A stretch of 64,000 nt of DNA from positions 62,001 to 126,000 of the forward strand of contig OZ176055.1 in assembly GCA_964247055.1 (NCBI GenBank). Direction: 5' to 3'. The notes beneath the pieces are model-generated. The model made no database searches and was not told the DNA's origin. It worked only from the letters and a program-made list of their open reading frames with translations. The position numbers were made by a program, and so were the translations under genes. Positions 1 through 41,200 of this stretch are shown here, one piece after another. This DNA is from Paragordius varius (Eukaryota > Animalia > Nematomorpha). Within the stretch, counting starts at the first letter, position 1. Every line of letters begins with the position of its first letter.

Positions 1-1386
1 ATCTTTCAGAAAATGATCTTTTTTCTGAAGTATCATTAGTTAAAAGATATATTAATAATGAAAAACTTAAATTATGGACAAAAGAAAATATACAGTAGAA
101 AAGAAATAGTTGGAAATATTTCATCATTTTGAAGCCAACTATATTACATACAATAATATTTTAAAAATTGTGGAATTCGCACTATCTTTACCTGGAACCA
201 ACGCTGCTACTGAGCGCGTTTTTTCCACAGTAAATCAGGTGTGGACATCGGAAAAATCAAATTTAAATGTTGAAACTTTAAAGGCCGTTTTATCTGTCCA
301 ATATAATTTGACAAATTCTTGTGAAGACTTCTACAATATTTTAAAAAATGATGACAATCTGCTAAAACGCATTCACTCAAACAAAAAATATACCAAAGAA
401 TAAAATATTTTCTTTAAAGTTTTTGTGTAAAAAAATAAACGAAATCACGTAAAATATTGTATAAGTCTTCATAATTTGTCAAATTATATTTGAACACACA
501 AAATGGCTTTTATTCAATATTTAAATTTGATTCCATGTCCTTACTTAATTTACTGTGGAAAAACGCGTTCAATAGCAGTGGTTCATGTAAAGATAATGCA
601 AATTCTACAATTAAAATATTATTGTATGAAACATAATTTGTTTAAAAATAATTATTTTAACCATTTCTATCCTACGTATTTTTTTCTGTTGTCCACAATA
701 TAAATTTTCATTCAATATATTTATTTAATAATGAGACTTCATCAAAAAGTGTCATTGTGCACCGTCTTGTCTTCCAAATAATCGTTTCTGTTTGTATAAA
801 ACATTTTTATATTCTGGCTATTCATTGAGCCTTGTTTTTCTGGATGCTTTATAATATTGCGATTAGGTAATGGTATAAAATTATTTTCTAACCTTTTTTA
901 ACTTGGAATTTCGACCTTTGTCCTGTGATAAAAAATAGGATTCTAGGAGATCACATTTTTATATACAATATTCAAGCATTTTAACATATAAATTTTCCAC
1001 ATCCAGGGGTAACAAATCAGTAGCTGTTTAAACGTTGTGTATCTGCCAATAATGTTTTGATTTAGATTATTCGCTAAATTGTTAAAAATATTTTTATGCC
1101 GCTTCTTGCATCACCCAGCGCACTTTGTGATGATTTCGTCTTTATTATTTTTTTCTAGAATATTAAAATCACTTCACCCTTTGTTCGTGCACATGGAAAT
1201 TTATTGAATAAGGTACAAACAACCTGTGAGGTACAAATTTTTTTATATTTATAATGAATTTGTGTTAAAAATAAATAAATATTGTAATAAATTTTTTGTA
1301 TAAAAATTTTTGGTTGTACCCCCCAATGACCCACCCCCTTCTCAGATTTGTCCCGCTTTTTCCTTCAAAAAATCTGGTCACCTTAA
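1..1386 (+). mobile_element. hAT DNA transposon 3' remnant: degenerate transposase C-terminus plus right TIR
   Basis: ORF 110-403 carries a hAT dimerisation-type motif (ALSLPGTNAATERVFS...KSNL...LKAVL). The upstream part (3-110) is broken by a frameshift and a TAG. A right-end TIR-like sequence AAATCTGGTCACCTTAA at ~1370-1386 (rc TTAAGGTGACCAGATTT) resembles hAT/Tip100-type ends. Probably lies in a DIP2 intron. Confidence 0.8.
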
Positions 1387-1444
1387 GTATATATAACATC
1401 TAGTAATATTCATGGTTACAATCAAATTTTTTCGATTTTTTTAG

Positions 1445-4400
1445 AGAAAAAATGTATTACTCAAAACGACTATCCACATGAATTGTATGATGGAAAAGAA
1501 AAGCAAGAGCCATATGCTCAAGGTTCCCAATCTCATTCAAGAAGCATCAATCAAAAAATGAAATGTGAGGAAAATAATTCGCCATCAAAACAAAATTCTA
1601 AACAAACGCTTTCTTCTTTTGAAGGTTAGATTGAAAATGAAATGAAATTTTTAAATTATGAATTATAAATTAATGATATTTATTGACTGGGTTTTAGTTC
1701 CATACAAGTTAAGATGGGTTTCCATTAAACGACCAATTTTCAGTTAACAGTATCATGTTGATTAGTTTGTCATAAAACGCTCTATTTTAATTATATCCTT
1801 TATAAAAATAAATTCGAAAAGTATATACATATAGGGACTGCATACGACAAAGTATGATCACATTCTTTAAGATTTATTAACGTGATTTTATAACCATATA
1901 TTCAGTTTTTTAAGCTAAATAATTATAATTGCTTTCAGATCTTCACGGTACAGTAGGCTCATTCAACAATGGATATTAGCCCTTCAAATAAGCCTTTTTT
2001 CGTCCTAGGGGCTACTTAAGTCCCAATATATCGTGTGTTTGATCTAACTTTTTTTTTCAATTATAAAAATGAAATTTTCTTTGTGGTGCCAATTATAGTA
2101 GAGTCACATTTATAAAAGCTCCTAAACTCTATCCACAAGATCCAATAAATATTCTGTGAACCGATTTTTCGGTTAAATCACATTTAGTCATTAATGATTT
2201 ATGTTATAGCCCTTATAAAGTCAATTGAGCGCTTAAAATTAAAGTTTTGAATAGAATTTCCTAGTGACATACTCTTCAAAAATATGGTTGTTTAATAAAA
2301 TTATACTAGGCTTCGATATTTTATTTCGATTTCACTTACAAATATAAATTGAATTTAGTTTGTAAAGAACCTCTTACGAAGAAAATTTCCAAGAAAAAGG
2401 GTCAGACCCCCAATTTTTGTCAAGTTGCTTTCATTCCGGCACCTCATAAAAGAAATTTCTCAAATGATTTATCTAAAACTACAACATCAACAACTAATTC
2501 TAAAGATGTTGGAAATATTAAAATAAGTCTCAATGAACCCAAACAAACGCCTACTGTGCCAAAAAATATTCAAGCAGAAACGATAAAATCTCACGATAAA
2601 GGTAATCCTTAAAATTTTAAAAATATTATAAAATTGTTTTATATTTATATCCTATTTAACCATTTTCAATAGAAATTACCCGTTCTTCCACAAACTTTGA
2701 AAAAGTTGATACATCCGATAAGTAATTTTATTTATATTTTTTTAATTTAGAAAAATTGGGGATTATAATAAAATTTATTGATTTAGGATATCTGAGGGGG
2801 TCACCACCAGTCTTTCAAGCAATTCTGAGAAAAATTCACCAATTTTACTTGGATATTCAAATACGAAAGAAAAAACTGTAAATTTTATATTTTTTTAGAT
2901 TTAATCGGGTTTTTTATGTTTTATAGAAATTTTTATATGTAATTAAATATTTTAGTTCCCAAAGGAAGCGAAAATAGAGATTGGCGAAAAACCAAAGCCC
3001 AAATTTTATTTTAATGGAACGAATGAAAATATGAATGGTAGATTTCATTTTTTTAGATTATTTTAAAAATTAATGAATTAAAAACCAGACTTTAAATGCA
3101 AATTGTGTAATGGTAATATTTACAGTAAAATTGAAATTATACGGAAAAATCTGGAAAATCAAAAACAACTGTTTTTCCTAAGACGACCATACTTTTTTAA
3201 ACCTTAATTTTATCCTATATTAGCTATTTAAATGATTGCTTTAGTAATATATCTCTATTTCACAATTTGCAGTTTAAAATAATGAGTGATATTTAACAAA
3301 TCTAGATTTGAAAAGTATGGTTACCTTTTGAAAATCTTTAAGTCCTTATACCTTTACGTTTCGTTCGTTTAGTTTAATTTTTTCTGTGATTAAATTTTCC
3401 AGAGAATCGCAAAAGACATGTCACCCCAAGAATATCGGCAAAAATTCAACAATTATTAAACACTCTTAAAGTATAATTTAATCAATTTCTTATTACCTTT
3501 ATTTTTTTAATTGTTAATATACCATTTACAATTCAATTTCACCCTTAAACAATTCAAATTCACCCTTGAACAATTCAAATTCACCCTCGAACAATTCAAA
3601 TTCACCCTCAAATAAAATATATGTTTTTGAAGATTAAAAATTATTTATATTTTATAAATTTTCAAAAATAAAAAATTTGTTTTGGATTAAAATAATACTG
3701 AAAAAAATAATAAACTATACCATAAACATATATTTCATAATAATTATGAATTATATTAGTTCGAAAACACATAATTTATTTTTAAAGGTGAATTTGAATT
3801 GTTCAAGGGTGAATTTGAACTGTAAATGGTATATAAATTATGCGCGTTTTTTTTGCGTTGCAGAAAATAGAAAAGAAGCAAGCCATTGATTTTTACAAAG
3901 AAGATCAATTCATTCTTGAAGGCCATTTTGGTAAATTTTGATAAAATTATCATTTCATTTTATTTCATAGATCCTGAAATAGGAAATAAACCCAAAAGCA
4001 GCGAAGGACCAATGGAACCTCTCTGGGGACCCCAGAAAGTTTATTTCCTTAAAAAATATTTGTTATACAGTCAGACTCCTTTTTGTACGAATTAATTTTG
4101 TTTTTTTTTGTAGATTTTCTTTCTTTTTGTTAATTTAGATATAAATAAATAATTTGAAGTTGTTTTTTTGCGCCTGGACAAAACTAATTTATAGGATTAT
4201 AACGATTTTTTAAACAATATAAATAAAAAGAAAATAATATATATTATGGACATCCACATTTTCTCTAAAATCAATTTAATTCATAAAATATTTAGCATAT
4301 ACAGTTTATTGATGTTTTATTAACCTTCATCATAATATTAATAAATTTTATTGAAAAAAAATTTTTTTAACTAAAAAAAATATATTTAACATAATCAAAC

Positions 4401-5409
4401 AGGTATTTTCATCACAATCAGTCAGTTTAACAAGTATGTTACATCATTGGGGAACGACTGCCCCCAAATGGCCCGCTATATCTGTCCTTGAGGCGTCTGA
4501 AAAAACGTGTCTAACACTAACATATGGTAAAGTTTTTTCCTTAAAAATATATGATAATTTTTAGTTAAAAAATAAGTTTTTTTTCCTTTTTACAGTAAAA
4601 ATTGTAAATTTGTTAGAGGCAAATCAATCTTTATAAATCTTTATTTTTTTGATCCGTAATTTTGCCATAAATCGCTTAGGATTATGTGGAATATATAATT
4701 GATGTGTTAGCAATTTACATCTCTATTCCTTATTTCGCCCATCAAAAAACGATATGTTATATGAAATCATGTTTTATTATATGAATATTAGTCTTTTACC
4801 TTTGATAATTATTTTTATTAAACTATATAGGGAAATTATTGAAACACGCTATCAAAATCGCATATAACCTTAAAACTACTTGGCGGTCTAATTCTTCTAT
4901 GTCCTCCTATGATGATGAAACTGGAGGAACTCCTATCAACGCGACAACACCTCCTGAAAAGGTATTTAAATCCTCTTTTCTCAAAAATTGCATTTAATTT
5001 ACTGTGGTCATTTATTAACATTTAAACCAAACTAATTGGTTCTTACTAATTTGCATTTTTCTGATTTTTATAAGTTATAATTGTTTAAAAAGTAAAAAAT
5101 GGAAAAACAAAAAAATGAAATTTAATTATTATTTTATTTCACATATTATTTGGAGAATATTAATAAATTTTACATATTTAAATTTGATTTTATATATATT
5201 AGATCGGACTAATTTATCCGAATTCGAATCCGATTGCCTTCCTTAGTGCTTTCTATGGCGTGCTTTTGGCTGGTATGATTCCTGTACCCCTGGAAATACC
5301 TCTTTCCAAAAAAGTTATTTATATTTTGCATGTCTAAAATAGATTTGTAACTAAAAATGCAATTTTTTTTTAAATTTATTTTACAAAATGAATAATTTAA
5401 AAAATTTTG

Positions 5410-5448
<39 letters not shown>

Positions 5449-8400
5449 AAGCCCGGCCTAAACCATAATATCTAATTTATTAATCATTGCCATTTACACT
5501 GCAAATTCACCCTCGAACAATTCAACACCCTTAAATAATTCAAAATCACCCTCGAACAATACTTAAATCCACCCTAAAATAAATTGTATTTTACTATATT
5601 TTTAAAAAATAAAATTTTGTTTGTAATTAATATAATAATAAACTAAACCATAAAGATATATTTCTTAATATTGTATTATATTAACCCGAAAACAAATAAT
5701 TTATTTTTCGGGTGAATTTGAATTGTTTAAGGGTGATGTTCAAGGTGAATTTGAATTGTTCAAGGGATTGTAAATGGTATAAAACCAAAATAACATAGCA
5801 TTCGATAATATGAAAATATATAAAATTAACCTCTCAACTAATATTTTTATGTTTTACAATGTACTCGAATATAAGATACAATTTGGATTCACTCGCAATG
5901 ATATCATAGAGTCTGGGCAATTAATGTTTAAATAAACCTTACAATGTTGGGATGTTCTAATTCTTTAAGTATAGATATTTCTCTGATGGCAGTACTGGGA
6001 ACACCTTCACATTCACTACAAAAATTAGGTTAACAAAACAATACCTATCTATTCTAATTTTTTTGATTGCCACATAGTTATCCGTTTTTTTATTTTTAGC
6101 TTTATACACTATGCCGTAGGTTCCTTCGCCTATTTTATCAAAATGTTCAAAATTTTCCATTAAAACCGATATAATATAAAATGTTATATTAAAGCCATAT
6201 CTGTCATATTCGTAAAACAGACGAATTTTATTTTTGGTATTCAAAATTCGCGCAATTCAAAAACCATATTATCGTATGATGTGATGATATATCACATCCA
6301 TAAAATAAGCCATATGATAAAATCTTAGAAGTTAAGTTTTACGAGGTAAAAATAATTAATATCCAGATAAAATATACATATTGTGACAGAAAGTTTATAG
6401 GGATTATCATGGTTCTTTTGGATTTTGTACTTACAAATATTTAAGAATATTATTTACATTTTTATTGTAGCTGCCCCATATCAGATAATGGCAAAATTTG
6501 CGCATATTTTATAATAAATTTTTTTGGTGAAAGCTAAATGCTTCATTCCAAAAAAATGAAATATATAATAAACTGTATATAAAAGGCATATGATATTTTA
6601 AAATTTTTTGATATTTATATGTGGGCTCCGAAAGTCTTAATTTCTTTCGCCCTTCTAAAATGGGCTAGTTCTCCTAAAACAAAGGCAATATTGTCAAAAT
6701 ATCGTGATAAAAAAATTTTAATATAAAGTATTTCAAAAAATTGATATTTTGTTTAAATAATATAATTAGTATTTTAATGAAGCGAGTTTTAAAGTATTTC
6801 AAAGCATGGTGGAAACGGTTAAGTTATAACATCTTCTATAAAATTCAATTCATAACATATCTATCACCGAATTAAAATTTAAAAACTCGTTTGCTTTAAA
6901 ATTTGTCAGAATTATAAAAAACAATCTATATTAAGCAAAAACTTCACAAAGAACATTTTTGATCAAATTTAGAGGTAATTGAAATGTTTATCATCGTCGT
7001 ATTATGTAAGAGAATATTTTTTAATCTTAACGCGTTTTAAGACCGTTTCCATCATGAAAACGTTTCAATAAAATTTTTCTAAAAACAAAATTTTGGAAAT
7101 TATGCATTGCAAAATATAATGCCATAATCTTGTTTTACAAAAAAAAGTTATCGCAAAATCGGTTTCCTACTTTAAGGCTTACATTAGAAGGGCGAAAAAA
7201 TTCAGACTTTCGAAACCATCATCTAGAATTCTATCGAAAAATATTATTTCGCCTTTAATTATAGTATATGATATATTATGATATTTTTTGGAATAACGCA
7301 TTTTTTTAAAAAAAAAACATTCAACAACTATTTTTTATGGCCCCTCCAATTTACACGCAGCGTATGATATCCAAAAAATAATATTAAAAATTACTTTATT
7401 TTTTACTAAAAGAAATGCACTTCATATTTGTTGTAGATAGACATCATTATAAATAATTCGATAATGCTGAAAATTTTATCAGCTTAAAAATTCATTAAAT
7501 ATACTTGCTTATAAATTTTAGAGAAGTTTTGCAAAATACACAGCCTAAGTATTTGGTTAAATTTTAGTTGTGTTTTTCAATTTGAGGACAGCCCATTTTT
7601 AACACTTCGATTTAAATTGAGTTCCTAACTACCCCAAACTAAATTTAAGTTAGTATTTCTTTAAAACTATTGAAGAAAACGGTCTTAATTCAAATTTATA
7701 TTTCCTGCTACTAATAATTAAATAAATATGCCAAAATATCTAAATATTTTGTTGTTAAAAAAAGTTCTAACTACTTCGACGCCATTTATTTTACAAATTT
7801 TTTTGCAAAATATCGTCTCCTATAATTTAAAGTGAAAATTTGTGGCTTATTTTTTATTTAAATTACATCTAACATTGATGGATAGAAAAAGCGGTTTATT
7901 TTGTATTATTTTCAATTTTACCATTGCACACATATCACGTTTACTAAATTTTTACCTTTCGGGTTTTACCTTAAAATAAGTAATATAAAGAATTAAATTA
8001 AAATTTTTATATATTTCCGTTTATTAATGTTATATAAGTGCAAAATTTTGCCATAGTTTCACTTCCTTCTATATTTTTAAATTTACCCTAAATTTAATCG
8101 AAGGACTAAAATGAATGTTTTGTATCCAAGCGTTAAATCAAAAATCAGGCTAAAAATGCTTTTATAATAACTTGAAATTTTTTATGCGTTTTCATCATGC
8201 TTTAAATTATCATTAAAGTTTCTTGTCGAAATTTCAGTCACACATTGAAAATTCTTATGGCAAATTTTTGGACTAACTTATTTCAGAGGAGGCCAAAAAC
8301 TTGAGCTTTGAGGCCACATCTAAAATTTAAATTTTTTTATTAATGTTTTATTTTTTAGATTTATTCATTTAGCTTCCACCAAAAAAATATTATTAAATAA

Positions 8401-11400
8401 AATGTGTATTAATTTTGCCATTTATGAGATGGAGCCACAAAAGTTAAATAAGTTTCTTATATCACTAGTAAGGCCCAAAACCAATATCATTATGGAAATT
8501 CTGATACATATATCTATCAGATTATATATTTTATTAGGATATTTTCATGTATTCCAGCATCTAAAATTTATTATCGCCAAATCTAGCCATTTTGCATTAA
8601 TTACGAAAAAATAGCCCATTTTAGATATATCCAAAAGTATGAGATTTTTGGATATAGAGGCATAGCGGAAACGATATAAAAACGCTTTGAGATATTTTAA
8701 AGCCATTTTTTACAATTAATGATGCTTAACATTCTATCATATAAGTTTGGTTAAAAAATTGGTATTTAAATTTAAATTAAATATTACTTGTGTTTTACAA
8801 AAGATCCAAATAAAAAATATTAAAACAATAGAAATTTTTAGGATTATTCTATTTTATAAAAACTATGTATTAAAATAATAATGATTTTATATCTTTTCAC
8901 CATGACAAAATAAGAACACTTTTTCAGGCATTTAGTCTATATTTATATTTTTTTTATCCTGCGATCTGGGCATATTAGTTTAGTTTTAGGCATACAAGCC
9001 CAATATAGAGAGGTCTAAAAAAACTAACCTTTCAATGAAACACAATATAAATACAATATTTTTGGAATGTAACATTTGGCTTTCACCTATTTGATTTTCA
9101 AACCATGTATATACGCCTTACTTAACCATATTGAAATGTATAAATGGTATTTTCCCTATTTAACAGCTCAGAAGGGGTTTTTATTAGTACACAGCGATTA
9201 TTTTTTTGTTACTAATAATAGCATTAGGTCAAACTTTACCATTTTACCAATTAAAATTATTTTATAAATCATTAATATTTTTAATTTATTTATTTTGATC
9301 AATTCGATTTGTTTGAACTTAAGATGGCCTGCCTTTGCTTATCTTCCAAAATATATAATTTTAATCAAAACATGTTTTTAACTATATTACTAGAATTGAT
9401 AATTATTATCAAAAATGGAATTTTTCTTGGTATGATACATGAAAAATATTTTTTCAAATAAATTTTTTGTGAAAATTGTAATTGTTACTCTGTTAGATCC
9501 CATGTTAGAAAAATTTGCACCCAGACGCCATCGTTCAAATTCGCTAAATCAAAACGATTTGTGCAATATCCAATCTGGAAATTTCCACAATTTATCCAGT
9601 TTTTATCCAAGGTTAAACACTATAAACCAGGGGTGTCCAACGCACGGCCTTTCAAAAAGTTTTTGCAGCCCGTGAGAATTGTTAAAAAAATAATTTTACG
9701 AAATCTAAGCATAATTTTCATAAACAAATTTTCTGAATAAATCCTCCCGAATTTCGGCATAGCAAAAAATAGATAAATAGTAGTTTTTACAGTTTTATGT
9801 TAATAATCTAAAAAAATATTTGTTAATGCCTATATATTTTGCGAATACAGCCCGCGGTTTTTTTTATCCAAAAGTGCGGCCCACGAATCCATTTGTGTTG
9901 GACATTCCTGTTTTGACAATAATCTTTTTTTAAATTATGTTTATCTAGATTTTATGATAAAAAGAAATTCACCCTTTCAATTAAATATAAAAAAGGGGAA
10001 AGTACAGTTAATTACAACAGTTATTCGCTTTATTGTTTTTTGTTTCATATTAGCAGTGGATTGATGCTATATTTAGTGATAAAATAAATTTTCAGATCGA
10101 TAGAATACTTCATGATGAATATTTTAATTAAATAAATAATATATTTCAACTAAATAACTTTGATTTCAAGCAATACGGTATAAGAATTAAGTTTTTTTTA
10201 TCTTGTTGAATAAAAATAAAGTTTGATCAAAGTAATAAATAAACAATAAGAACAGAAACGATTCCATTTTTGCAATGAGAATCCCAGACATTATACTATT
10301 TAGCTTATAAAATCTCTTAACCTTATTAAGTCTCAAAAATGCGTCTAGGTTTAAAGAAATTTAGACAAAGCGTAAAAATATAAAGACAAATATTTTTTTT
10401 AAAAACAATCCAATACTACCAATATCCATCTTTATTTCATACTTGCGGTTAAAACAATGAATATTAAAAAAATTGAGTGAAAAAGATGTGGTCTTTTGGA
10501 AAAAAATATTTGTCTTTATGTTTTTAGCCTGTTGTTGCTTTTGTTTCATGGTTAAATCTTTATTAATTATGAAATATACTTTAAATGATAGGCACAAATT
10601 TAACCATTTATTATATCTAAAACTTGAGCACGGATCCGTGATAGGCGTTATTCCTTATGTCCTTTCTCGTAAAAGAACAACTTCTATACACACGGAGCTG
10701 TGGATGGATTTAAATGGCTTAACTCAAACAGATTTGATCTTTTTATATGAAACTGGGTCCCAAGTATTTTACATATACATATATATATTACAGTAAATTT
10801 TGAAATTATATGGACAAGGATTTTTAAAAACCACTATACTTTTTTCAAATTGATTTATTTGGATGTAACTCATTCTTTTAGATTGCAAAGTTTTAAATAG
10901 AGATGTATATCGTTATTACAATCAATTATATCGCTTTGTATATATATATCCAATAGGCTTATATTGAGTTAAAACAGCCCATAGATATTCCACATTTATG
11001 TCACCAAATGTCAAAAAATAAAAGTTCATCCATTTGTTGGCAATTGTATTTGAATGAAGTACGAACTTTGTTTCCTGAAGACTATATAAAAGTATCTAAT
11101 TTATTACATATTGGACCCTGTTTTAATCCGTTTTTTATTACGAACTATTATCACAGCAATAAATTAACAACCTGGGCTAAAAACGGTTTCGATACTTATC
11201 TCTGGTTTAAAATATACACATAAAAGTTTCATATGATATTCAAAATTTAGATAATCGTGATGATCGATAAATATGGCACAAATCTATTTTTGCTGTACGA
11301 AGAGGAATCCACCTTGAATGCAACATTTTTTCAAATTCCGATTCCAATTAAACCCAATGCATCGCTCGCCCATTTATACTATAAAACAGAGTTTGCTGAA

Positions 11401-14400
11401 ACAACTGACCTTGAGAATTATAATATTGTCAAAAATGTAAATATTATCTTGAAAAATTGTAGAGAAGACAAAACATCAGAATCCGGTATACTTTAATTGC
11501 ATAAAATTTATAATTATTTATATTTATTTAATATATTTATATAGGTGTTGATTATACGAAATTCCTTGGGAAAGGTTTTATTTTTCAATATTACTTATTT
11601 TTGCAATCAACTCACTTATTGTTTAATTTATTTTTACAGATGTCATACTTTATGTCAATGATTTCATTTGTTGCAGTTTAAGACCTGGCATTTACAATTA
11701 TGAACTGCAAAATACTGTGCACAGGTAAAACTAAAATCGAAAAAATGTAAAAATTGGTTTCATAATAAAAAGTAAAAATACATGTAAAATTAGTAATTAT
11801 CTAACGGTAAAAATCACAACAAGTCTTAGAATCACTTTAAGTAACTCATTATGAGATAAGGCAAAATAAGGTAACTTTGTAGAAATGTTTATGTTAATTA
11901 AATTAGGTATCCACAGTTTCATAAAAGCTTGTGGCCCTCTTCTTCGTGTGCCCGAGTCAACTTAATAGGGGCTGTATATTATAAAAATTCATTTATATAT
12001 ATAGGCCATTGGTTTATATTTTTTAATTGATAATTTCTTTGATCTTTATTCGAAAAATAATAATGCTAGATTGATGTTACAATTTATTTGCCTAAAAACT
12101 TTATAGAGCAAATCAAATAACTTATTTGTAAACATAAAACATTACCTACCGGTACATTTTATATTTAGAAATGTTCCACTGGTTTCCAATAAAAACGTGT
12201 TATATGCCCAATACATAAATGCCAAAACAACAGATTTAAAAGATGATACTTTAACTCTGACTTTGTTTAACTTTGTTCCACAAAATGTCAATTTTAGAAT
12301 CAAATCAAACGTGAGTTTTCTTATACATTTTTTCCATATTTACTATCGTAAGTTTAATAATAATGTATTATATTATTATCATTTAGCTTTCGTTGACTAT
12401 CAGGTCCAATTTTGCCCCAACAATTTATGCAGTTACTCTTACAGATTTTAAACCTTATGCCATACATTTGAATCTAGGGGTTTAGTTTTACATATAAATT
12501 ACAAAACCACACGTTATGTAAAAACTTTTTTTACACATATCAAAAAAATTTACATGTGTTTTTGTTGAGATATGAAACATTAAACAAATGGAAACAGCTG
12601 AAGTTAAAAAAAATAAAAAAAAACTGTGTTGTCGTTTTGCTAAATTTAAACATGTTAAAATCCAAAAAGAACCGGTTATCAAAAATGTTTTTTTAAATGG
12701 CCATAAATGTATAATTACTATTGTATATAATCATATAAAAAACATTTTATCTCATCACGTAAGCTTTTTAATGGATATTTATTTTAAAGCTTTCAATTAT
12801 TTATGTTCAAATTATTTAAGCACCAGGTAAATCTGTACTCCTAAAAATATTATTAGTTTTAAAAACCTTATTTAAATATTTTTAGATAATTTTACCATAT
12901 TAAAATTTAACAAAACCACAAAAAACGGTTTTATTAACTTTAATTTTTTTAAACTACTTCAACTTGTTTTTTGGTTCTTTGATGATTCTGTATTTAAATG
13001 ACATGAATCTATCCAAAAAATTGAATCTTATAAAACTCACAAAAGGTATTCCCAAATTTGAAACACTATGTATATACTATTATATTTTAGATTGGTATTA
13101 TTGAACAACAGAATGGCGTGATAAAAATTCCAAATGTGACAAAACAGAGAAATTCTCTCATCACAAAAATAATATTTTACAAAAGCAGGAAAGATGATAC
13201 CTTTGTTAACGCTTTCCAAATTCGTCCAACAACCCTAACCATATTGAAAGCCCCCATTTTTAATTGTCATAATCTATGTCATGATTATTAAAACTTAACT
13301 GCGAAATAAATACAGCTAGCGGTTTTATAATGAATTTGATCTTTTTAATCTCCTTTTATTAGAAATTAAAATATTAGGTATGTTTTGAATTGAATAAATA
13401 TTTTATCTTCAACGATACATTAAAATACAATCAGCCATTATACCTCTTTAATTCCAATGTTATAATGAGAAAAAATTTTTAGGCATACCAAAAAAATTTG
13501 ATTAAATCTGATGTAAAAATATAATTTTTGATTAATTTAACGGTTTTGCGCATCACACGTATAAAATTTTGCTTCAAATTCAGAAAGAATGCAATTTAAT
13601 AAAAAACATTTAACTAGAAAGTCTCCCCTAAAAATAAGGATATTTAAGGACATTTTTTTTTCATTGTTTAAAGTTCCTGGAAAATATGATTTATATTTAT
13701 TTATTATAATTTTAATACATTAATATTTTTACATAGATTAAACAAATTGAAAAATAATTTTCCATGTTATAGTAATCATTTATATTTTTTTATGCTAAAA
13801 ATTAATGTCGAGAGATTTACGGTGACTTACGTCGGCGACAAGATAGAGTCAGTCGCTTTTTCATACTTTTTTAGTATTATTCATAACAAAACGAATAAAA
13901 TATTCTGAAAATTTAGATATAAATTACAATTTTTTATCATATAATTTGACATAAAAATGGGCGAATATCTTTGTTAAAATGCAATATTTTAAAAATGATT
14001 AAGACATCTTTTGTGTCACCTTCATTCAATGCTCCAGGTAAGAAAACGACAGCCAGCACTAAACAAACAAATATTGTAATATTACATTTTCTCCCAGTAA
14101 TGTATTTTACATAATTATTATTATATGATATATTATAAAAATAAATGAAACTCAACTTTTTAGGTTGTTTCGGTTAATAGTAAAAAGTTATGATATGTTG
14201 AATTATTATTGATTAAAAATACCCAGAGAAATGATTATTCTTTGAGTAAGTAACAGACTGTTAGGAGTCTCACAAAGATTATTTACGCATCTTTCTTCCC
14301 AAATAACGTCAAAAGTCTTAAAATAAGCCTAATTAAAAGAAATAACGGTAATCAGATATTGTGTGGAAAAAATTGGTTATTTATGAGTTTCCATAATTAT

Positions 14401-17400
14401 AAATATATAGATTTCTTTAATCTCACGCCTTATATGTATAAATGAGAGGGACAGGTAAAAAGGACTTTAAGGTAACTTAATACGATTATTTATAGTTATA
14501 TATATTAATATCTTATCAATACAAGGTTAAATAAAATAATTTGATTTTTTAGTACATTATTTATTAAGTATAACAGCCATTTCAAATTGTATTGAAATTC
14601 GATCAGGTACAGAGTTATAAAATATAGTAAAACAAAATATCTACTGTATTTTAGATCAGAATGAAAAATATTTTAGATGTGTCCAAATAGAGTGTCACAA
14701 TATACTGCCTAGAGAAGTCACTTAAAACGAACAAACATAAAATTTAAAATAGATACCATCCATAAAATTTAAATAATTATCTTTTTTTGTTAGGATAATG
14801 GACAAAATAATAAATCAAATGACATTTGACAATTTAATTATATATATTAGGCAAAAAATATTTTTTAAGCTTTTTTCCATAGTAGGATGGCATGACAAAG
14901 TTTTTTAAATTTATGTGACAATTAAATGCTTTTGCTATGAAAAAAAACTTTATAATTGAATTTTATAATATGTCAAATTTGAAATTTAAAAAATACAGTG
15001 AAGGGTCAAAAATCTTTGAAAATTTTTTTGTCAACCTAATAATATTTAAAAATTAATTGACTTTTGTAATTTAATCATTTAATCTATGGCGTGCTTTTGG
15101 CAGGTATGATCCCTGTACCCCTGGAAATACCTCTATCCAAAAAAGTTATTAATATTCTACAGAAAACTTGCATACTTTATAACAAAACATTGCATTTTTT
15201 TATTGAAAATTTATTTTATTTACAAATACATGATAATTATAATCCAAAAAATTTTTATATAATTTTTATATATCGAAGTCCGGGCTAAAACCATAATACT
15301 GAATTTATTAATTATATACCATTTACACTGCAAATTCACCCTTAAACAATTCAAATTCACCTTTTAAGAAATTCACCCTAAAATAAATTGTGTTTATTAA
15401 ATAAATTAAGCCTTAAAGATCTATTTAGTATTAATAATGAGTTATATTAACCCGAAAATACATAATTTATTTTTTGGTGAATTTGAATTGTTCAAGGGTG
15501 AAATTGTTCATTGAATTTGAAATTAAGGGTGAATTTAAATTGTTAAGGGTCATTTTGAATTGTAAATGGTACATTAAATCCATTGTATAATAACATAGAA
15601 ATTGATAATATAAAATTATATAAATCTAACCTCTCAACTAATATTTTTATGTTTTATAATATGCTCTATTCCATTATTATATTAGGATAGTATATTTCAA
15701 CGTGTGGGAATCGCCCTAAGTCTATGCAATGTAACGACAATCCTAACTTCAACCTCAATAATTCGTGCCTTACCAGCCATATTTGGTCAACACAATGGTG
15801 GAATGATCGCCGAAACGCCACCTCCATCAGCTGATCTGGAGAGCTCAGGTCTGAAAATTGAAACTACTATAAGGACAAAACGCAATAACTTAATAAAGAC
15901 TAATATCCTTATTTTTTTAATGTTGAAATTTTTATTTAAACCTATTGCCTTGGGTTATTATATTTTAATGGGTAACTCACTTATTTATATAGTATACGAT
16001 CGTAATCGAAGTTATATCGAAAAATCAAGGCATAAAAATAATTTCTCTATAAGAAAAATTAATCTCCCTGTTATAACGTTTTGTCTTTATGTGTGTGTGT
16101 GTGTGTGTTATAAGCTAGCCATGTAGTGACTCTTGGCTTTCTCATAAATTAGTTCTGGGATTCTCTCAACTATTGAGGAAAGGTTAGATTTGTTATTGAT
16201 TTAAACATGTCGATCCACCGCTTTTTGGGTCGGCCCCTTCTGCGGGTGCCATCTACCAACCCAAAGAGTATGCTTTTTTCTAGCGAGTCGGATCGCAGGA
16301 TATGACCCAGATATTTTAGCTGTTTGAAGATTATTAAATCGTGAAGTAAAAATTCGGGTTTGATGAGGTTGAGGATATAAGGATTGGAGATGTGGGTGGG
16401 CTTTCCAGGAGATTCTCAATATTTTCCGAAAGCACACCACATTTGAAAAGAGTTAATGCGGGCTTTGTCAATGGATTTGCATATCCATGACTCGGACCCA
16501 TAAATTGCCACGGGGTATATCATATCGCCTTCTGGATGGCAAGTTTGGTTGGAAATCTTATGACTGACCGACGAGTTCCAAATTTTGGACAGTTTACCCA
16601 TAGTAGCACGTCCTAATGCTAGCCGTGCTCGGATGTAATTATGGAGCCTAAATATTTACAGTGATCAGTTAGTTCGATGGTGGAGTTATTGATTGTAAAT
16701 GGTAATTGTGGAGCGTTTAGGCTAACTTATACACAGAAACATTAATACGCAATTGTAACTCTCCCCAACATATTGGGGGCACGGATCGGTGGTCTTACTA
16801 TTTGCCGTCTTCGGTACGCCGACGACACCATCCTCTTGTCAGAATCCCACACGGACATGACCTATCTTTTGAATAATCTCACCATCGAAGCAAGTTTGAT
16901 GGGTCTTAAGCTGAACCCAGCTAAATCTAAAATAATGATCCTAAACGCTCCACAATTACCATTTACAATCAATGACACCACCATCGAACTAACTGTCTTT
17001 ATAGTTTTAATATTTAATTCCGCCAACGCCGTTCTTCAAAATAAAGTGCTTTAATTTTAGTCTTATGATATAAAATGTTTTTTGTTTGATATTAGATAGT
17101 CCCTATTTCTCATCTCCTAATCCAATGCCTCTATATTCTGATGATTTAACCTTTCCTTCAGCGGACACGCCAGAATCCACAAAAGTAAATTATCAGAGGT
17201 ATATTTATAATTTACATTTATAATAATCATTATAAACGCACCTGAGATGGATGTTCAAAAACCCTAGTTTTTTTCATATACTACAGACTTAATCATATTG
17301 TTGGGGTTTAGGATGTAAAAACTTAATGCTTAGTCGCTTTAAAAAATCAAAACATTTTTTTTGTTTTTATATTAGGAGAAACAAAAAACACGTCGGAACG

Positions 17401-20400: not shown

Positions 20401-23400
20401 CGAACAATCAAGTTTAAGAATTGATGCATTTTCCGCTTCTTATGGAATCGTTAAGATAAAAAAAGAATTGAATTCTTCTAATTTTCCCCAAAAGCAAATG
20501 ATTCAAAATCAAAACTCACCTTCAAAAAGAAATGGCATAGATTTTGGGACGAATGCTTCTGTTCCATTTTACAACAGTATGCATATATGTATCTTGTATT
20601 AAACACTTTTTTTTCAAATTTTGAATACAGTTAAAATTAAAATTATTATATGGAAAAAACGTAAAAAGTAAAAATTTTATATTATTTATTATTGTATTTA
20701 TTATTGTATATATTAATTAAAAGGCATACATGGATAAAATTGAGAATTTAAAATTGAATGCGTTCTTAATTAACATGTCTAATTTTTATTTAGCGACTTA
20801 ACACGATAGGTATTAAATTCATGATTCAAAAATTTGCTTTTTTATATACAGTGTCGATTAAAATTATGCGGTAAATGCGCAAAAATATAAAGACAAAAAT
20901 GCTTTTAAATAACCGCGTACTTTTTTAGACTTGATTATTTTACTATGATAATAATTCATTGTTTTAGAGTGCAAGATGTGAATTGGTAACACAATATATA
21001 AAAATTATATAATTTATCCAAGAAAATCAAGGTTTAAAAAAGTATGGGATTGCTTTTTTAAATATAATTATCTTTTTGTTTTAACATTTTGTCTGAGTTT
21101 TACTGCAAAACATATACAGTAATATACAGTAAAAATTGAAATTATACGAACAAAAATTAAAAAATATAAAGACAAATATTTTTTATAAAGACAGCCATAC
21201 TTTTTTAAGCTTCATTTTTTTAAATATAACTATTGCATATTATACAATTGATATGTATATTGGTGACACAATTATTTGTATATTTTAAATTTGTAATAAA
21301 ATGAGAAAAATTAAGGATCAAAAAAGTATGGTTGTCTTTTAGAAAAAAATATTTGTCTTTATATTTTTACGTTTTGTCATTCTGTGTAATGTCATTTTTC
21401 ACTGTAAAATCTTTAGCTAGGTATATTATGTCTTAAAAATTTAAATTTTTACCATATATATGTATGTTTTAGGTTGTATTGTTTGTATCAAAATGAATTT
21501 TCTGAACAATGAAAATAAATGCGGCGGCATTCCTAATAATAATGCCGCTATGATTTGTGCCAAAGATGAGATTGGCCAAATTTGTATTTCTAACAATCAA
21601 TCTCCTTCGCCTTCTTTCTCTTACATTGGACTTAAAGGCTTATCCCAATCTATTTTCCAGGTAATTTTATATTTTAGTTTATGGGGAATTGTAAAATTAT
21701 AAAGGAAAACTTATTGTAAATGACTATTCTCATATACTATACTTTTGTATCCTTGATATAATAACTATTTAATAGCAACATAAAATGGAGATCATTATTA
21801 TTAGCCTACCATTGCAATTAGAAGTCATAGTATATCGAGCAATGGGGTGCCTTATGCAATAAAGTGACTGATGAGTCCACAACAAAGATGAAACTCTTCT
21901 CACACTATGATAAACGCTGTCATTTTAAAATTTTCGTTTCATAAAGCTGCCACCTATTGCTTGATAGGAAGTACTATGATTTCTAATAGTAATGGTAGGC
22001 TTATAACAATGATTTCCATATTATGTTGTTAATAAATGGGAAATGGCGTTTTTCGCCAAAAATATTGAAATTTTTAATAAAAATATATATTTCTAAAAAC
22101 CATAATTTTTTAGACCCTATTTTTTTATTTACCTATGCCTTAAATAAAGAATAGAAATGTAATACTCTTTTTGTATCATCAATCACATAGGGTATAATGG
22201 TAAAAAATCAAGGATTAAAAAATACTGTTATCATTATTCCTTATATTAATTGATGCCTACTTTTTTTCGGTTAACCGTAAAATTATAATTTAACAGGTGA
22301 GACCTGTACACAAAGATGGGAGCTTAGTCCTTGAAAATAGTCAATCGTTCATTAGAACTGGATTTTATGGATTTGTCCATCAAGTAAAAATTTATTTGAA
22401 AATTCGACAATTAGAAATTAGTTTTTAGTAAAATCAATTTTTATATTTTAAATTATTCAGCAAAAAATATATGTCCTTGGTCGATGTGACAATCAAATGT
22501 ATGTTAGACATCGCATTCATAACATTGATGATTTGAAAGCTACTGTGTTGGCCATTTCACCACATAAGTTCATTTATAAAGCCAGGTAAATTGCTATTTT
22601 TTTGGATTTAAGATTTTTGGAAAAACTGTAAAAAACTAATCGACAAATATTTTTTTCGAAAGACAATTAAATTTTTTAAAATATTGATATTACCCACATA
22701 AACTATTTGATCACAACTGTAAAATAAATAATTGATGGTGTCACCAATATTCCATATATCTATTTCAAACTTTGCATTTTAATAATGAGATTATATTAAA
22801 AAATCAAGGTAGAAAAGGTATGGTGGTATTTTAGAAAAAAAATATTTGGATATTTTTACGTTTAGTCCGTACATTATTAGTCTTTAATGTATATTTTATA
22901 ATTTTTATTGATTTTTTTACATAGAATAACCATTTTTGCAACACATGTCCTTTGTGACGATAGGATTGTTATAATAGCCGAACAAAGATATGAATACACC
23001 GAAAATGAGGTTTAAATTTTAAATTATAAACTTTTTAATGTATTATATAATATTCACCCTAAAATAAATTATGTGTTTTATAAGATTATATTACCTATAT
23101 TTTTTTATATTTCTCTAAAAAATGAAATGTTTGTCAAAAATAATTCTGAAATAATAAACTATGCGCCATAAAGATATATTCCATATTATCGATGATGAGT
23201 TATATTAGCTGCCCTAAAACACATATTTAAATTGTTCAAGGGTGAATTTGAATTGCTTAAGGTAGAATTTAAATTGTTCAAGGGTGAATATGAATTGTTT
23301 AAGGGTAAATTTTAATTGTTTAAGGTAGAATTTAAATTGTTCAAGGGTGAATATGAATTGTTTAAGGGTAAATATTAATTGTTTAAGGTAGAATTTAAAT

Positions 23401-26400
23401 TGTTCAAGGGTGAATATGAATTGTTTAAGGGTAAATTTGAATTGTTCAAGGGTGAATTTGAATTGTTCAAGGGGGAATTTGAATTTAAATGGTATATTTC
23501 CATACATATGTTGATTAAAATTTAACATTTAATATTTTTAGAGTTTTCAGTGGATGAGTCGCGTTTTACAAACAGTTTCTCAGATTCACGGCACCAATAT
23601 TTATTGCTTAGCTTTGGTTCAGCCGAATCATTTACCTAAAGTAAAATTATAAATTTAGTAAAAAATGAAATGAAAATATTAATTTTAAGATTGCTCTACT
23701 TTTTTAAACTTAATTTATTTTAATATAAATTTTTGTTTTAAACTGCAGAGTATGAATGAAATACAATAAATGATATATTTTACATTTGTAATTAATTTAC
23801 TTTGTCTTTTTTTGAAACAAAATATGGTTGTCTTTATATATAACTTGCAGCCTGTATAAATTCAATTTTACTGTGTACTTTTATCAATTAATTAAACCTT
23901 TTTTTTTTATTTTGAAGACAACTCTAGGAAATGTCATTGTGTCCGAAGTTAGGAAGATGTTTGAAAATGGTTGTCTTTATCCCATAAATCTGGTCATGTG
24001 CCCACACGCTGCAATCCCTAACCTACCCAACAAACGAGAAAAACCTCCAGGTTTTTTTTTCAAAACTTAAAGTAAAAGTAAAAGGGACAAATTTTTTATA
24101 CATATAGTAAAAATTAATTATAAATACAAAACAATTAAAGCGAAGAATGGCAATTTTTTAAAAAAACGCACATAGATCCTTGCCTTGATTTTTTCTATAT
24201 ATATATATATATATATAGTTGAAGTTAGCTGATTTGAGATAAGTTTTAATTGTTGTTTTCCAATTGCTTCTATTTTTCGCTTCTTCTATTTTAGTTTGGT
24301 CTCAGTAGGGTCATTTTTAGAAGGTCTGCCAGAGCCAGTTGTGGAGTAGGACATCATTATATGTATATAATTATCTGGCCTTCTAGGATGGATGTGACCA
24401 CCCCATCTCAGTCTTTTGGCTCTTAGAAAGGGGTTAAGAGCAGTGATTTCGAGGATTTTATAGGAATCAAATTGATTATCAAAGTTATAGAGTTTAGGAT
24501 TATGTAAAAAAGGATCGTTTGGAGTATTTTAGATTCAGAGTTTTGGAATTTACTAAGGTTAGACTTTGTCATGGGCCAACATTCCGTGCCTTACCGCTAT
24601 TCCGTTTCAAATTTGATGTATTTATAATTAATTATGTGTTTTAGTCCATGGTATTTTTTCCATGCTTCAGATGATGATCTGTGTTTGAGGCCATCACTGA
24701 TACCTCCTTTTGCGGATATTTTATCACCCAGATATTTAAACAGTTTCGTAATTGTAGTTATTATTAGAGATTGCGTTTAAATTCGGTTCTGGTATGGGGG
24801 GTAGGTTGTCGATGCAATTCGATCAAGTCAAGGCATCAACTCTAAGTGATTTTGGGTTGGAGCATTTTTTATGAATCCTGAGGAGAAGTCACATTTAGGA
24901 CACAATATAGAATTTGATTTTACAGTTAAAGTGCAAATTCTACATGGGTACTCAATAAAACTTCATTATATTATTATGCATTAGTTTAGTTTTGTTTGGA
25001 TTGATTTTGAGGCCATGTCTTTCCAAGCAATTTCTCCATTTGTCAATAGATAAAAAGAGATTGTCTTCAAATGATTTCATTATTACAGGGTCATCTGTAA
25101 AGAGCAGTTCCTGCGAATGTTCTTTGAAATCTCATCAATACAAAACCTTGGTGTAGCCCCCTGATTGTAAATTGATTGATTCGGATATAGTAGACCATAA
25201 AAAGTTTTGTTTAGGTCTTTGGAGCCGGAATATAGCACATTCTTCAATTCCGTTACTTTTCTTAGGGTCCCCATGTTATCATCGATCTTGGGATAGAGTC
25301 AAAAGCCTTTTCTAGGGGTCGAAGAAGGCATAAAAGAGGGGTATATTTCTGAGATGGGGCTGCTTGTATTTCACGGAGTATAAAAATCGCATCAATTGTG
25401 CTTTTGCCAGATTGGAAGCCAAATTGAATGTCGTCTAGATTAACTTTAAGTTTGAGCTCATAAATTTTAAAGGTGTGTTCCAAGATTTAATGGGCCTGAA
25501 TGAGTGTGGAAGGTTGGAGCGAATCATTTCCCTTGTAGATGGGTATGTGGTGATGGTATGAAGACAAGACATCTGCAAATTGACTCAACTCAAACGCAAA
25601 ATCAGTCTCATCTACAGGAAAAATTCATTTAATGAAAATAAAAAAAACTATCTATGCTCAAAAAGAAATTCTATTATATATATATATATATATATATGAT
25701 TGGAATTGTGTAATAAAATTATACATCTTGACATATTTCGCAACCCAAAACTAATATTTAATTTGAAAAGTTTAAAATGTTTTATATTTCAGGGAAATTG
25801 AGAAAATTACGCATTATAAAATTATGTAATTTATCATAAATTAAGCTTGAATGCGTATAAATTTATACCATTAAAGCTCCATTTATTATAAATTACATAT
25901 TATATATCAGCGTTCATATTTGTCCTATTAACTATTTATAGACATATCTCCCGGTTCCCAATATGTCGGAAACATTGTTAGGGGGCAACGTTTTGCGCGA
26001 ACACAAGGATTAACCTTAAATCAAATGGGAACTTTGGAAAAGGATCCATTCTTACAGGTTGTTAACAATTCAATATTTTAGGTTTGTTTGATATTTCGGT
26101 AAAAATATGAGTATTAAAGATTATTAAAGGATATTTTATCTAATATGTAAGATAAATTAAGATTTTAGTTTAGTTGTAAAATTGTTTTTGGAATTAAAGT
26201 TGAGTTTTTTTAAGAATTATCAAAAAAATAAAAGACCAATATTTCATTATAAACATATTTTATAAAAAGTAAAAGACCAATATTTCATAATAAACAATTT
26301 TAGCAAAAATTCGTTTATTAGCTATTGTTTGGGTTAATTTACCATAATAAAAGGTAATTCATTTCTATGTTTGTTAATATAAGTATTGAAAAATATATAC

Positions 26401-38266: not shown

Positions 38267-41200
38267 ATGGCTCGATGTATACGGAAATGGGAAGTTTTTC
38301 CGGGCAAGAATCGTATATATTGCGATGGTCGCATCATTATGGCAAAACAAACTGGCGTCTTTTATCTTACGCTGTTTATAATAGTTGCCATATCTATCCT
38401 ATTCTTTGTGTTTGAGTAAGTTTTTAAAAATACTTATAAAATTTAGTTTTAAATTTTATTTCTGATTTAATTTTTTTTAGTTGTCCATTCCTATCCTACC
38501 ATTTATCATTATCAATTCCAATCCTTGCGGCTGTTTTGCTCATATTCGTTTTACTGACATTGTTTCGAACGAGTTTCATAGATCCTGGAATCATTCCAAG
38601 AGCTTCTCCTCAAGAAGCCGATTACATTGCTAAATATGGTAACTCATATTTTACAAAAAATTATATAACTCAATTTCAAGTTTAATTTAAGAATCATATA
38701 TTTATAAATTATCCATTTGTTTTTGCTTAAATCAAATAATCGTTCGATAATGTTGTATTTTTCGATATAATCTCATTAATAGATGTCCAACACACATTCT
38801 ATACTTTCTAGTCTAGAAATTAATTTTCTATGCTTCCACATTCATATATTTTATTGATTTTTTCCATGTATTTCTCTGTAATTCCACTTTTTCCTCAAAA
38901 GAACCGTAAAATATAAGAGAATGGACTTTATAGTATTTTCTTAGGTAGGTAGGTACATTTCCCTTACAGGTGTTTCTTTGAGAATACGTTTTCTAAAGCC
39001 AACTTGTATAAACTTTGTTGCACACAACATTGTTTAGAATGTAAACTGCTTAAATTTTATTGATTTTTTGTTTAATTTTTTGTTTTTTTGGAATGAACTA
39101 TTGTTAGCCAGGGGCATTTATGCCTCGAATTAATTTTATTAGAACTTTGATGACTTTTTTAAAATTAGTTGATATTATTGGGTATTTTTTGTCTAATTAG
39201 CCAAAATTATTATGGCGAAATTAAATTTTAAAAATTTATTATATATTTAATTTAAGAATCCAAACATGTATTTTATAGTTTTAAAGTTTTAGTATCGCAG
39301 CATCTCTGTTTAAAAAATGAAATTATTTTAAATTATCCAATGTTTATAATTTTATTTATTAGTTGTATATAACAATGTTTTTTATAAATTTATATACACA
39401 TTCATAATCTTTCATATTTTTTATTAATAATCTTTCATTTATTTTGTAAAAAACCTTTTTTTCACCTGGATTTCTATGTATATATTATGAATCATCACAG
39501 TTGACATATGACCTAAATTATGCGCATTTTCATTAACAATATGATAAATAGTTTTAAGATTTAAAAAAACCAATTAGTTCAAAATATGAATCTCTAAAAT
39601 TATCTAAAATTATTTTCCAATTATATATTAACACAGAGTACAAAAAAATTACCATTAAGGTTTATGGTATGAGTAAGTATATATTACTAGAAAGTTATTA
39701 ATTAATTGTTGCCTGGCAATAATTAATAACTTTTTAGCAACATAAAAGGTATAAAGCCAGTATGTTCTATACAATGTATTTAACTTACATGAAAACATTG
39801 TATTGAATAATAAATTTTAGTGTATAATCAATTTACATCTCTATTCGCTATTTGAAAACCCAAAACAGCAATTTTTTCCCACATAAAGGTTTAAAAATGT
39901 GTTTTTTTATCACACAATTTTTTAAATTTTGTCTTAACTTTACTGTTTTTATATGATAGGTAAATTCAAAATTATAGATTATTTCATAGCAAAAACTTAA
40001 AAAATTGTTTTTAGAACTGCTAATCCTTAAAAGAAACCATATTTTTTTGAACATGTTTCTTCTTTATAATTTATATAGGTGTATGGTAAATTGAATGTAT
40101 TATCAAATTATTCCGTATCTAATACTTACTTAGTAACCCAAAACAATAGTGCTTTGAAAAAAAACAATATCTTTTTAAAAATATGGCTTTTTTATGAATT
40201 ATTCTCAAAAAAATTATTTTATTGTTACGATTTGTCCTTATAATTTCAATTTTCTATTCTTTCCCAAAATTATAACTTTTCAAAAAATCATGAAGATTAA
40301 ATATACCATTTACAGTTCAAATTCACCCATGAACAATTCAAATTCACCCTTGAACAATTCATATTCACCCTAAAAATAATTTGTGTTTTCGGGCTAATAT
40401 AACTCATTATTAGTATGAAATACATCTTAATGGTATAGTTTATTATTTTCCCAGTATTATTTTAATTTAATACAAAATTTTATTATTTTTTTAAAATTTA
40501 TAAAAATATTGGTAATTTTTAATCTTAAAAAACATTTAATTTATTTGAGGGTGAATTTGAATTGTTTAAGGGTGAATTTAAATTGTTCGAGGGTGAATTT
40601 AAATTGTTTAAGGGTGAATTTAAATTGTTCGAGGGTGAATTTAAATTGTTTAAGGGTGAATTTAAATTGTTCGAGGGTGAATTTGATTTGTTTAAGGGTG
40701 AATTTAAATTGTTCGAGGGTGAATTTGAATTGTTTAAGGGTGAATTTAAATTGTTTGAGGGTGAATTTGAATTGTTCGAGGGTGAATTTGAATTGTTTAA
40801 GGGTGAATTTGAATTGTTTGAGGGTGAATTTGAATTGTTCGAGGTTGAGTTTGAATTGTTTAAAGGTGAATTTGAATTGTTTAAGGGTGAATTTGAATTG
40901 TTTAAAGGTGAATTTGAATTGTTTGAGGGTGAATTTGAATTGTTCGAGGTTGAGTTTGAATTGTTTAAGGGTGAAATTCAATTGTAAATGGTATATTTTG
41001 TCTTTTATTTCCTATAGCAATAGCTCATTCAAATGCCGCTTTGGGAATTACTAATGCAACAGCTGATTCATACGGACAAACGCCAATTCCCCCACGGTTC
41101 ATGGAGGTTTGCATTAACGGTCAACTCATAAAACTCAAGTATTGTTACACTTGTAAGATTTATCGACCACCCCGGGCCTCCCATTGTTCCCTTTGTGATA

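Follow-up and report, generated by a model that had tools for sequence, protein, structure and literature searches.

Rearrangements of the fork stalling and template switching or microhomology-mediated break-induced replication type (FoSTeS/MMBIR), described in the human genomic-disorder literature, leave duplication – inverted segment – duplication structures. We describe here a locus of this shape in the horsehair worm Paragordius varius, where an inverted copy of the 5′ part of a CDK2-like gene and of its upstream flank lies in an intron of the DIP2 gene, within a stretch of 64,000 nucleotides of contig OZ176055.1 (assembly GCA_964247055.1), called the window below. The locus shares with the FoSTeS/MMBIR products an inverted copy coming from tens of kb away, the duplication of a flank, microhomology at a junction and the lack of transposon hallmarks; unlike them, it is old, presumably fixed, found in an invertebrate and visible only as its diverged product, one of its junctions is without microhomology, and its mechanism has to be deduced from that product.

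Other described systems resemble parts of this locus. Like nested antisense genes in long introns, the CDK2-like copy, designated CDK′, resembles a gene, comes with an upstream region of its own and lies antisense in a host intron, but it is truncated at exon 3. Like mutually exclusive duplicated exons, a second copy of a DIP2 exon (copy B) is found with a donor in the next intron and with silent-only differences; unlike them, it is deprived of its first 49 nt and of an acceptor, and an in-frame stop lies ahead of it. Lastly, a conserved partial gene duplicate has been reported in Triticeae (PMC6092874) which, like CDK′, is a truncated gene copy under purifying selection and not decaying; its function was tested experimentally, whereas for CDK′ the constraint is deduced from the ratio of silent to replacement changes (8:0), and a protein made from it would consist of the kinase N-lobe alone.

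As a whole, our results are best explained by an old template-switch duplication which left DIP2 intact and whose gene fragments differ from their parents at silent positions only, an explanation to which we give a probability of roughly 0.6. The structure itself would be an ordinary, though neat, template-switch duplication, and what would matter are the codon-clean, seemingly dead fragments: if they are translated, they would provide a testable new mini-protein and, if they are not, they would point to an undescribed process coupling DNA copies to protein sequence.

The inverted duplicate in the DIP2 intron

The window corresponds to C6:62001-126000 in an assembly of 110.5 Mb, made of 44 contigs (designated below by C-numbers) and with a GC content of ~25%, that of a published hairworm genome being 26.9% (10.1101/2023.06.26.546503). 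Positions given without a contig refer to the window. The elements of the locus are as follows.

5203..5313, plus strand: DIP2 exon N, intact and working (111 nt, phase 0-0, donor GT at 5314; read directly)
5252..5866, plus strand: T, first copy (A) of the duplicated target (contains the final 62 nt of exon N, its donor and almost all of the original intron)
5859..5866, no strand: left junction between T and S′ (microhomology of 8 nt, imperfect, with T′ and the source agreeing at 7 of the 8)
5859..15082, minus strand: S′, inverted duplicate of C6:34710-46541 (source 21 kb upstream on the same contig, outside the window)
15083..15666, plus strand: T′, copy B of the duplicated target (starts mid-exon at the right junction, 15082/15083)
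15083..15144, plus strand: dead exon N fragment in T′ (62 nt, three silent differences; decoy donor next to it, at 15145)
15686..15847, plus strand: DIP2 exon N+1 (single copy genome-wide; its acceptor closes the 10,372-nt intron 5314-15685)

The host gene was identified from its exons, searched singly. PF06464 (DMAP1-binding) is found at C6:59112-59198 (plus strand, 27.9 bits) and PF23024 (DIP2-type AMP domain) at ~33.6 kb in the window (plus strand, 28.3 bits), both above cut-off; an N-terminal DMAP1-binding domain followed on the same strand by a DIP2-type AMP-binding domain is the order that identifies DIP2. On its predicted exon structure, DIP2 remains an intact working gene despite the insertion, because the 5′ half of exon N runs on into copy A without a break, and because the original acceptor lies after copy B. 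Its intron, now 10.4 kb, is host to an antisense CDK fragment and a putative decoy donor.

S′ had been taken in the initial annotation for foreign, captured DNA, and turns out to be an inverted copy of a stretch of the same contig. This source (S, ~11.8 kb, represented by 9.2 kb in the window copy) runs from the 5′ flank of the CDK2-like gene into its third exon (exons 1-3a), and its end-to-end match on the minus strand is the sole other copy of S′, a search of the worm's own genome giving no third one. S′ as a whole exists in two copies only, its internal pieces related to miniature inverted-repeat transposable elements (MITEs) or other repeats being the only multi-copy ones. Its GC content (~25%) is the same as that of its surroundings, without any shift in composition; it has no terminal repeats, no short target duplication, the target duplication being 0.6 kb, and no long open reading frames (ORFs). 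A foreign or mobile origin of the block is rejected, given the inverted source 21 kb upstream and the lack of hallmarks of transposons or foreign DNA.

The inserted DNA is an inverted copy of nearby DNA of the same chromosome, and a 0.6-kb target is duplicated as direct repeats on its flanks. On the assembled sequence, this T – inverted S′ – T′ arrangement shows that one intrachromosomal event placed the inverted copy in the intron after DIP2 exon N, and we regard this structural account of the locus as highly probable. The existence of the direct repeats, here placed at 5252-5866 and 15083-15666, had been correctly recognised, as had the interruption of the CDK gene in mid-exon at the left junction, which falls in exon 3 after the codons for ..LYLIFEY. 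At this junction, the homology of T runs to 5866 and that of the source begins at 5859, a match of 7/8 or better having a chance of ~0.002 at the local composition. The event would most simply consist of two template switches of the FoSTeS/MMBIR type, at a replication fork or during repair synthesis: synthesis would have proceeded through T, jumped via the 8-nt microhomology to the opposite strand in CDK exon 3, continued leftward over ~11.8 kb, and jumped back to the middle of DIP2 exon N. A circular intermediate, in which S would be joined to T, could yield an identical T – insert – T′ topology by Campbell-type integration through homologous recombination in T, and nothing in the sequence separates this model from template switching; it would however require a chimeric circle in which both of these odd joins already existed, followed by its integration, whereas template switching is direct, and we hold the circle for very improbable.

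Age of the duplication

Over 8392 aligned non-coding nt, S and S′ differ by 735 substitutions (8.8%, substitutions only) and by 144 indel events (17 per kb). This divergence is patchy: the distal 8 kb differ by 5-7%, individual 200-nt windows there falling as low as 2%, and the 3 kb beside CDK′ differ by 15-18%; later gene conversion probably lowered the divergence in the distal part. The introns of T and T′ differ at 15.6% of their well-aligned sites (5446-5858), with 12 indel events across 5314-5858. As this value is close to that of the proximal part of S/S′, one old event would account for both. Repeated elements are present in both duplicated segments:

5490..5781, no strand: MITE-like high-copy element in T, also in T′, with inverted-repeat arms
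7598..8136, no strand: ~590-bp high-copy repeat in S′, also in the source

The MITE-like element, which makes up about half of the repeat T and has 2281 first-look candidate copies genome-wide (~73-78% identity), is common to T and T′ and thus predates the duplication. Transposable element (TE) insertions private to the source are found at C6:44707-45297, where a further copy of the ~590-bp repeat lies, and at ~38.0-40.05 kb. From its neutral divergence, the event looks old: the claim that the rearrangement is recent does not agree with 5-18% of non-coding divergence between S and S′, with their indels and private TE insertions, or with the matching divergence of the T/T′ introns. At 23214-23528 and 40509-41054 in the window, a ~21-33-nt unit akin to the GGTGAATTTGAATTGTT motif in the MITE-like element is repeated in long arrays, which give long spurious ORFs on both strands.

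The initial annotation further supposed that two long-separated DIP2 alleles or paralogs had been joined, and held an assembly chimera to be equally possible. A genome search finds the full CDK locus at the source, 21 kb upstream, and reveals neither a second full CDK nor any relic of the 3′ exons of CDK′, the rest of the CDK gene being single-copy; it reveals no second DIP2 either, the upstream exons, the 5′ half of exon N and exon N+1 all being single-copy. The allelic divergence of the sequenced animal is estimated from one comparison only, that of C29 (whole, 15.7 kb) with C11:641509-657099, which gives 2-29 mismatches per 9-12 kb (0.02-0.24%), far from what long-separated alleles would require; the other unplaced contigs, mostly (TAAAA)n satellite, telomere-like repeats and the mitochondrion, are uninformative in this respect. 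C29 appears as an unpurged alternative version of the C11 segment, with many length changes in a tandem array of ~150-bp period.

An assembly artefact would mean that a mis-join or chimera put alternative-haplotype or mis-oriented sequence into the intron, and the position of the locus, less than 80 kb from the contig end, could favour it. However, two independent chimeric joins would be required, both junctions are base-precise and there are no N gaps; the copy is internal, inverted and provided with a TE content of its own, its divergence of 5-18% is ~30-fold or more above the allelic one, and the assembly has no haplotig of this locus. Such an artefact is thus unlikely.

Silent-only change in the gene fragments

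The source CDK gene (plus strand) is complete-looking, with exon 1 at C6:46240-46355, exon 2 at 46385-46462 and exon 3 from 46488, the later exons carrying the WYRAPE and DSEIDQLFKIF motifs. The exons being handled singly, the GEGTYG loop and the PSTAIRE helix of a CDK1/2-type kinase are read in exons 1-2, and exon 3 is closest to CDK2 (118 bits), then to CDK1 (109 bits), in a single-exon search. Its first introns are tiny (C6:46356-46384, 29 nt, and 46463-46487, 25 nt), one of them with a GTT donor; the gene also has introns of 1-10 kb. The truncated copy comprises three parts.

6045..6160, minus strand: CDK′ exon 1 (ATG kept; three silent differences from the source)
5938..6015, minus strand: CDK′ exon 2 (PSTAIRE helix; three silent differences)
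5859..5912, minus strand: CDK′ exon 3 fragment (the initial 54 nt of the exon, up to the kinase hinge)

The ATG and the four splice dinucleotides are all preserved in CDK′, and its two introns are, as in the source, 29 and 25 nt long. It is accompanied by 9 kb of upstream flank, and the presence of both introns and of this flank leads us to reject a processed retrocopy. It stops where the N-lobe ends in the hinge, at the residue matching CDK2 ~82, and its open frame continues for 8 codons into T before a stop.

All 8 differences that CDK′ shows over 246 coding nt are silent, with no replacement. The 62 exonic nt shared by T and T′ (5252-5313 and 15083-15144) differ at exactly three positions (GCT/GCA, ATT/ATC and CTT/CTA), which are all synonymous, as had been noticed initially. 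When both fragments are considered together, 11 silent and 0 replacement changes are found in 306 nt, 10 of the 11 at third positions, while 10.9 replacements would be expected (P=2e-5) from base-specific rates of the non-coding alignment and with only the working copies assumed to be constrained. Indels are also missing (0 in 302 nt versus 5.2 expected, P=0.006), and the CDK′ introns differ at 10 of 54 sites versus 8 of 248 in the exons (Fisher, 2e-4). The 3:0 ratio of the DIP2 fragment is not significant by itself, ~2 replacements being expected, and the significance thus comes from the CDK′ fragment. Low-divergence islands elsewhere in S/S′ are not codon-clean, with many stops and amino-acid changes in any open frame, which indicates that the silent-only pattern is specific to true exons. 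No other recognisable gene was found within the duplicated segment, which was searched to test whether all of S′ looks "alive".

Silent changes themselves are not rare: 11 are observed versus 6.7 expected at the mean non-coding rate, and the divergence of the silent sites (roughly 0.14-0.16) is no lower than the neutral divergence nearby. We can exclude that gene conversion homogenised the exons, since their silent sites are at least as diverged as non-coding DNA. The initial interpretation is partly upheld: the signature of a protein-level filter is there (11:0, no indels, splice sites kept), and the joining of long-separated alleles that was attached to it is not retained.

Direct reading confirms that copy B starts mid-exon and is devoid of an acceptor, as initially described: an in-frame TAA lies at 15067-15069 and no AG is found from there to 15083. 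Copy B is rejected as an alternative or mutually exclusive coding exon, its acceptor being absent and a stop lying in frame ahead of its 5′ edge. At 15086-15110 in the window, the silent GCT-to-GCA change of copy B turns CTG/GTATGA into CAG/GTATGA, a near-consensus donor, and the short frame ATG..CAG (15086-15103) would be in phase with exon N+1 if spliced to it, which could be due to chance or reflect a possible alternative first exon.

A comparable situation is found at a second, unrelated locus, where the last coding exon of the V-ATPase c gene (C11:656608-656748, minus strand) is followed downstream by seven truncated copies of its end (array C11:655002-656748). Like T′, each is a truncated exon 3′ end with a donor, located in a downstream region and differing from the working exon at silent sites; unlike the members of this array, T′ is single, a 9.2-kb inverted duplicate lies between it and its parent, and a 5′ gene fragment with a start and two introns is present. 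Over all seven V-ATPase c copies, silent and replacement codon differences stand at 41:6, and over the four copies closest to the exon at 26:0, the replacement changes being confined to the three most distal copies. Within these closest four, one site shows every one of the four Ala codons, and some Leu codons have changed by two steps; TGA and TAA are also swapped. Each copy has an in-frame stop (TGA or TAA) followed ~8 nt later by a conserved donor-like CAG/GTGA, and alternative last exons are rejected in the absence of an acceptor at any 5′ edge. The array occurs almost identically on C11 and on C29, and is therefore genuine DNA, not something produced by the assembly. Its spacers contain a recurrent CAGCTG motif. 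With this second locus, the silent-only pattern would be best seen as a property of the genome and not as evidence for a special origin of the block. Tandem decoy copies (period ~137-144 nt) of a ZDHHC intron-exon junction, located at 43100-44516 in the window before the real exon at ~44462, were not retained for another check of silent-only change, their exonic parts (20-50 nt, indel-rich) being too short for a codon test.

The simplest reading for the first fragment would be that CDK′ is, or long was, translated, because the promoter side of the gene is still there, with the ATG, the splice sites and introns of the original lengths, and because it ends at the boundary between N-lobe and hinge. 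The putative mini-gene, antisense in DIP2, would encode the CDK2 N-lobe only (glycine loop and PSTAIRE helix, to the hinge), and could possibly act as a cyclin or inhibitor decoy. More generally, truncated gene fragments might be held in place under a real protein-level filter, either through the CDK′ mini-gene or through an undescribed screening of non-translated exon copies against protein sequence, and with the present block this filter would extend to an inverted duplicate of kb scale and to the 5′ part of a gene; we offer this proposal as tentative and rather doubtful.

The pattern could alternatively have been acquired before truncation. A complete CDK paralogue, nested antisense in DIP2, would have worked for long, until a recent microhomology-mediated deletion took its 3′ part and the end of a longer copy A. 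This would account for the 8:0 ratio and for the ATG, splice sites and intron lengths without any truncated protein, the 8-nt microhomology being then a deletion scar. It nevertheless requires an extra event, observed shortly after it occurred, it is at odds with the lack of any relic of the 3′ exons, and it does not cover T′ or the V-ATPase c pattern, all of which make it quite unlikely.

It could also be that the rearrangement is recent and drew on a second working haplotype of very high divergence: a template switch or an unequal exchange between homologues would have put the S′ and T′ of this haplotype 2 into haplotype 1, so that they were "born diverged". Silent-only exons, diverged introns and mosaic divergence would then result from one event, and selection on dead fragments would not have to be invoked. 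The two alleles would however have to differ by 9-18% and by indels on the kb scale, against 0.02-0.24% in the sole haplotig-like pair, and the k-mer heterozygosity of a related hairworm is only 0.55% (10.1101/2023.06.26.546503). The seven mutually different, codon-clean V-ATPase c copies, present on C11 and C29, would moreover be left unexplained. Very divergent haplotypes are thus not supported, as judged from one allelic comparison and one related species, and we give them as little chance as the late truncation.

Finally, the fragments could have been held at the nucleotide level for a role as RNA, the silent changes having all occurred in the working parents; for example, CDK′, antisense in the DIP2 pre-mRNA, could pair with the CDK mRNA. 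The antisense orientation of CDK′ relative to DIP2 transcription, the conservation of its exons next to diverged introns, which are not part of the mature mRNA, and the eight silent differences, compatible with change in the parent lineage alone, are all in line with this possibility. On the other hand, T′ and the V-ATPase c copies are sense-oriented, and the latter differ mutually by private silent changes (the two-step Leu changes and the TGA/TAA swaps), contrary to prediction; this makes frozen copies slightly less likely still than the two preceding alternatives. On quantitative grounds, we also rejected gene conversion, "selection by proxy", conveyor-belt snapshots and donor-only cassettes as explanations, as the silent divergence is too high and as the working V-ATPase exon has states absent from every copy.

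We consequently keep the old template-switch duplication, with DIP2 intact and fragments changed only silently, as our preferred explanation, against which several points weigh. The right junction (15082/15083) has a microhomology of at most 1 nt, the structure rests on one assembly, and S/S′ divergence is over-dispersed (index of dispersion 4.8), which does not correspond to a simple, clock-like single event. No mechanism tested explains codon-clean fragments that have no start or acceptor, such as T′ and the V-ATPase copies, and we know of no citable precedent for a free-standing kinase N-lobe.

Neighbouring sequences and other contigs

A GT92 glycosyltransferase gene sits between the source CDK gene and DIP2. 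DIP2 introns contain GC-richer (up to 40%) reverse-transcriptase fragments at 16100-17050 and 24950-25480 in the window (RVT_1, 28 bits, just below cut-off), and a fragment of a hAT dimerisation domain is found at 110-400.

Among the other contigs, C12-C42 are mostly pure satellite of the (TAAAA)n type (16-71 kb), and C28 starts with degenerate, CCCTAA-like telomeric repeats. C44 (15.7 kb) looks mitochondrial by its size and composition, and it contains, over its positions 1-6000, perfect zero-spacer hairpins with arms of up to 208 nt, such hairpins being a signature of horsehair worms.

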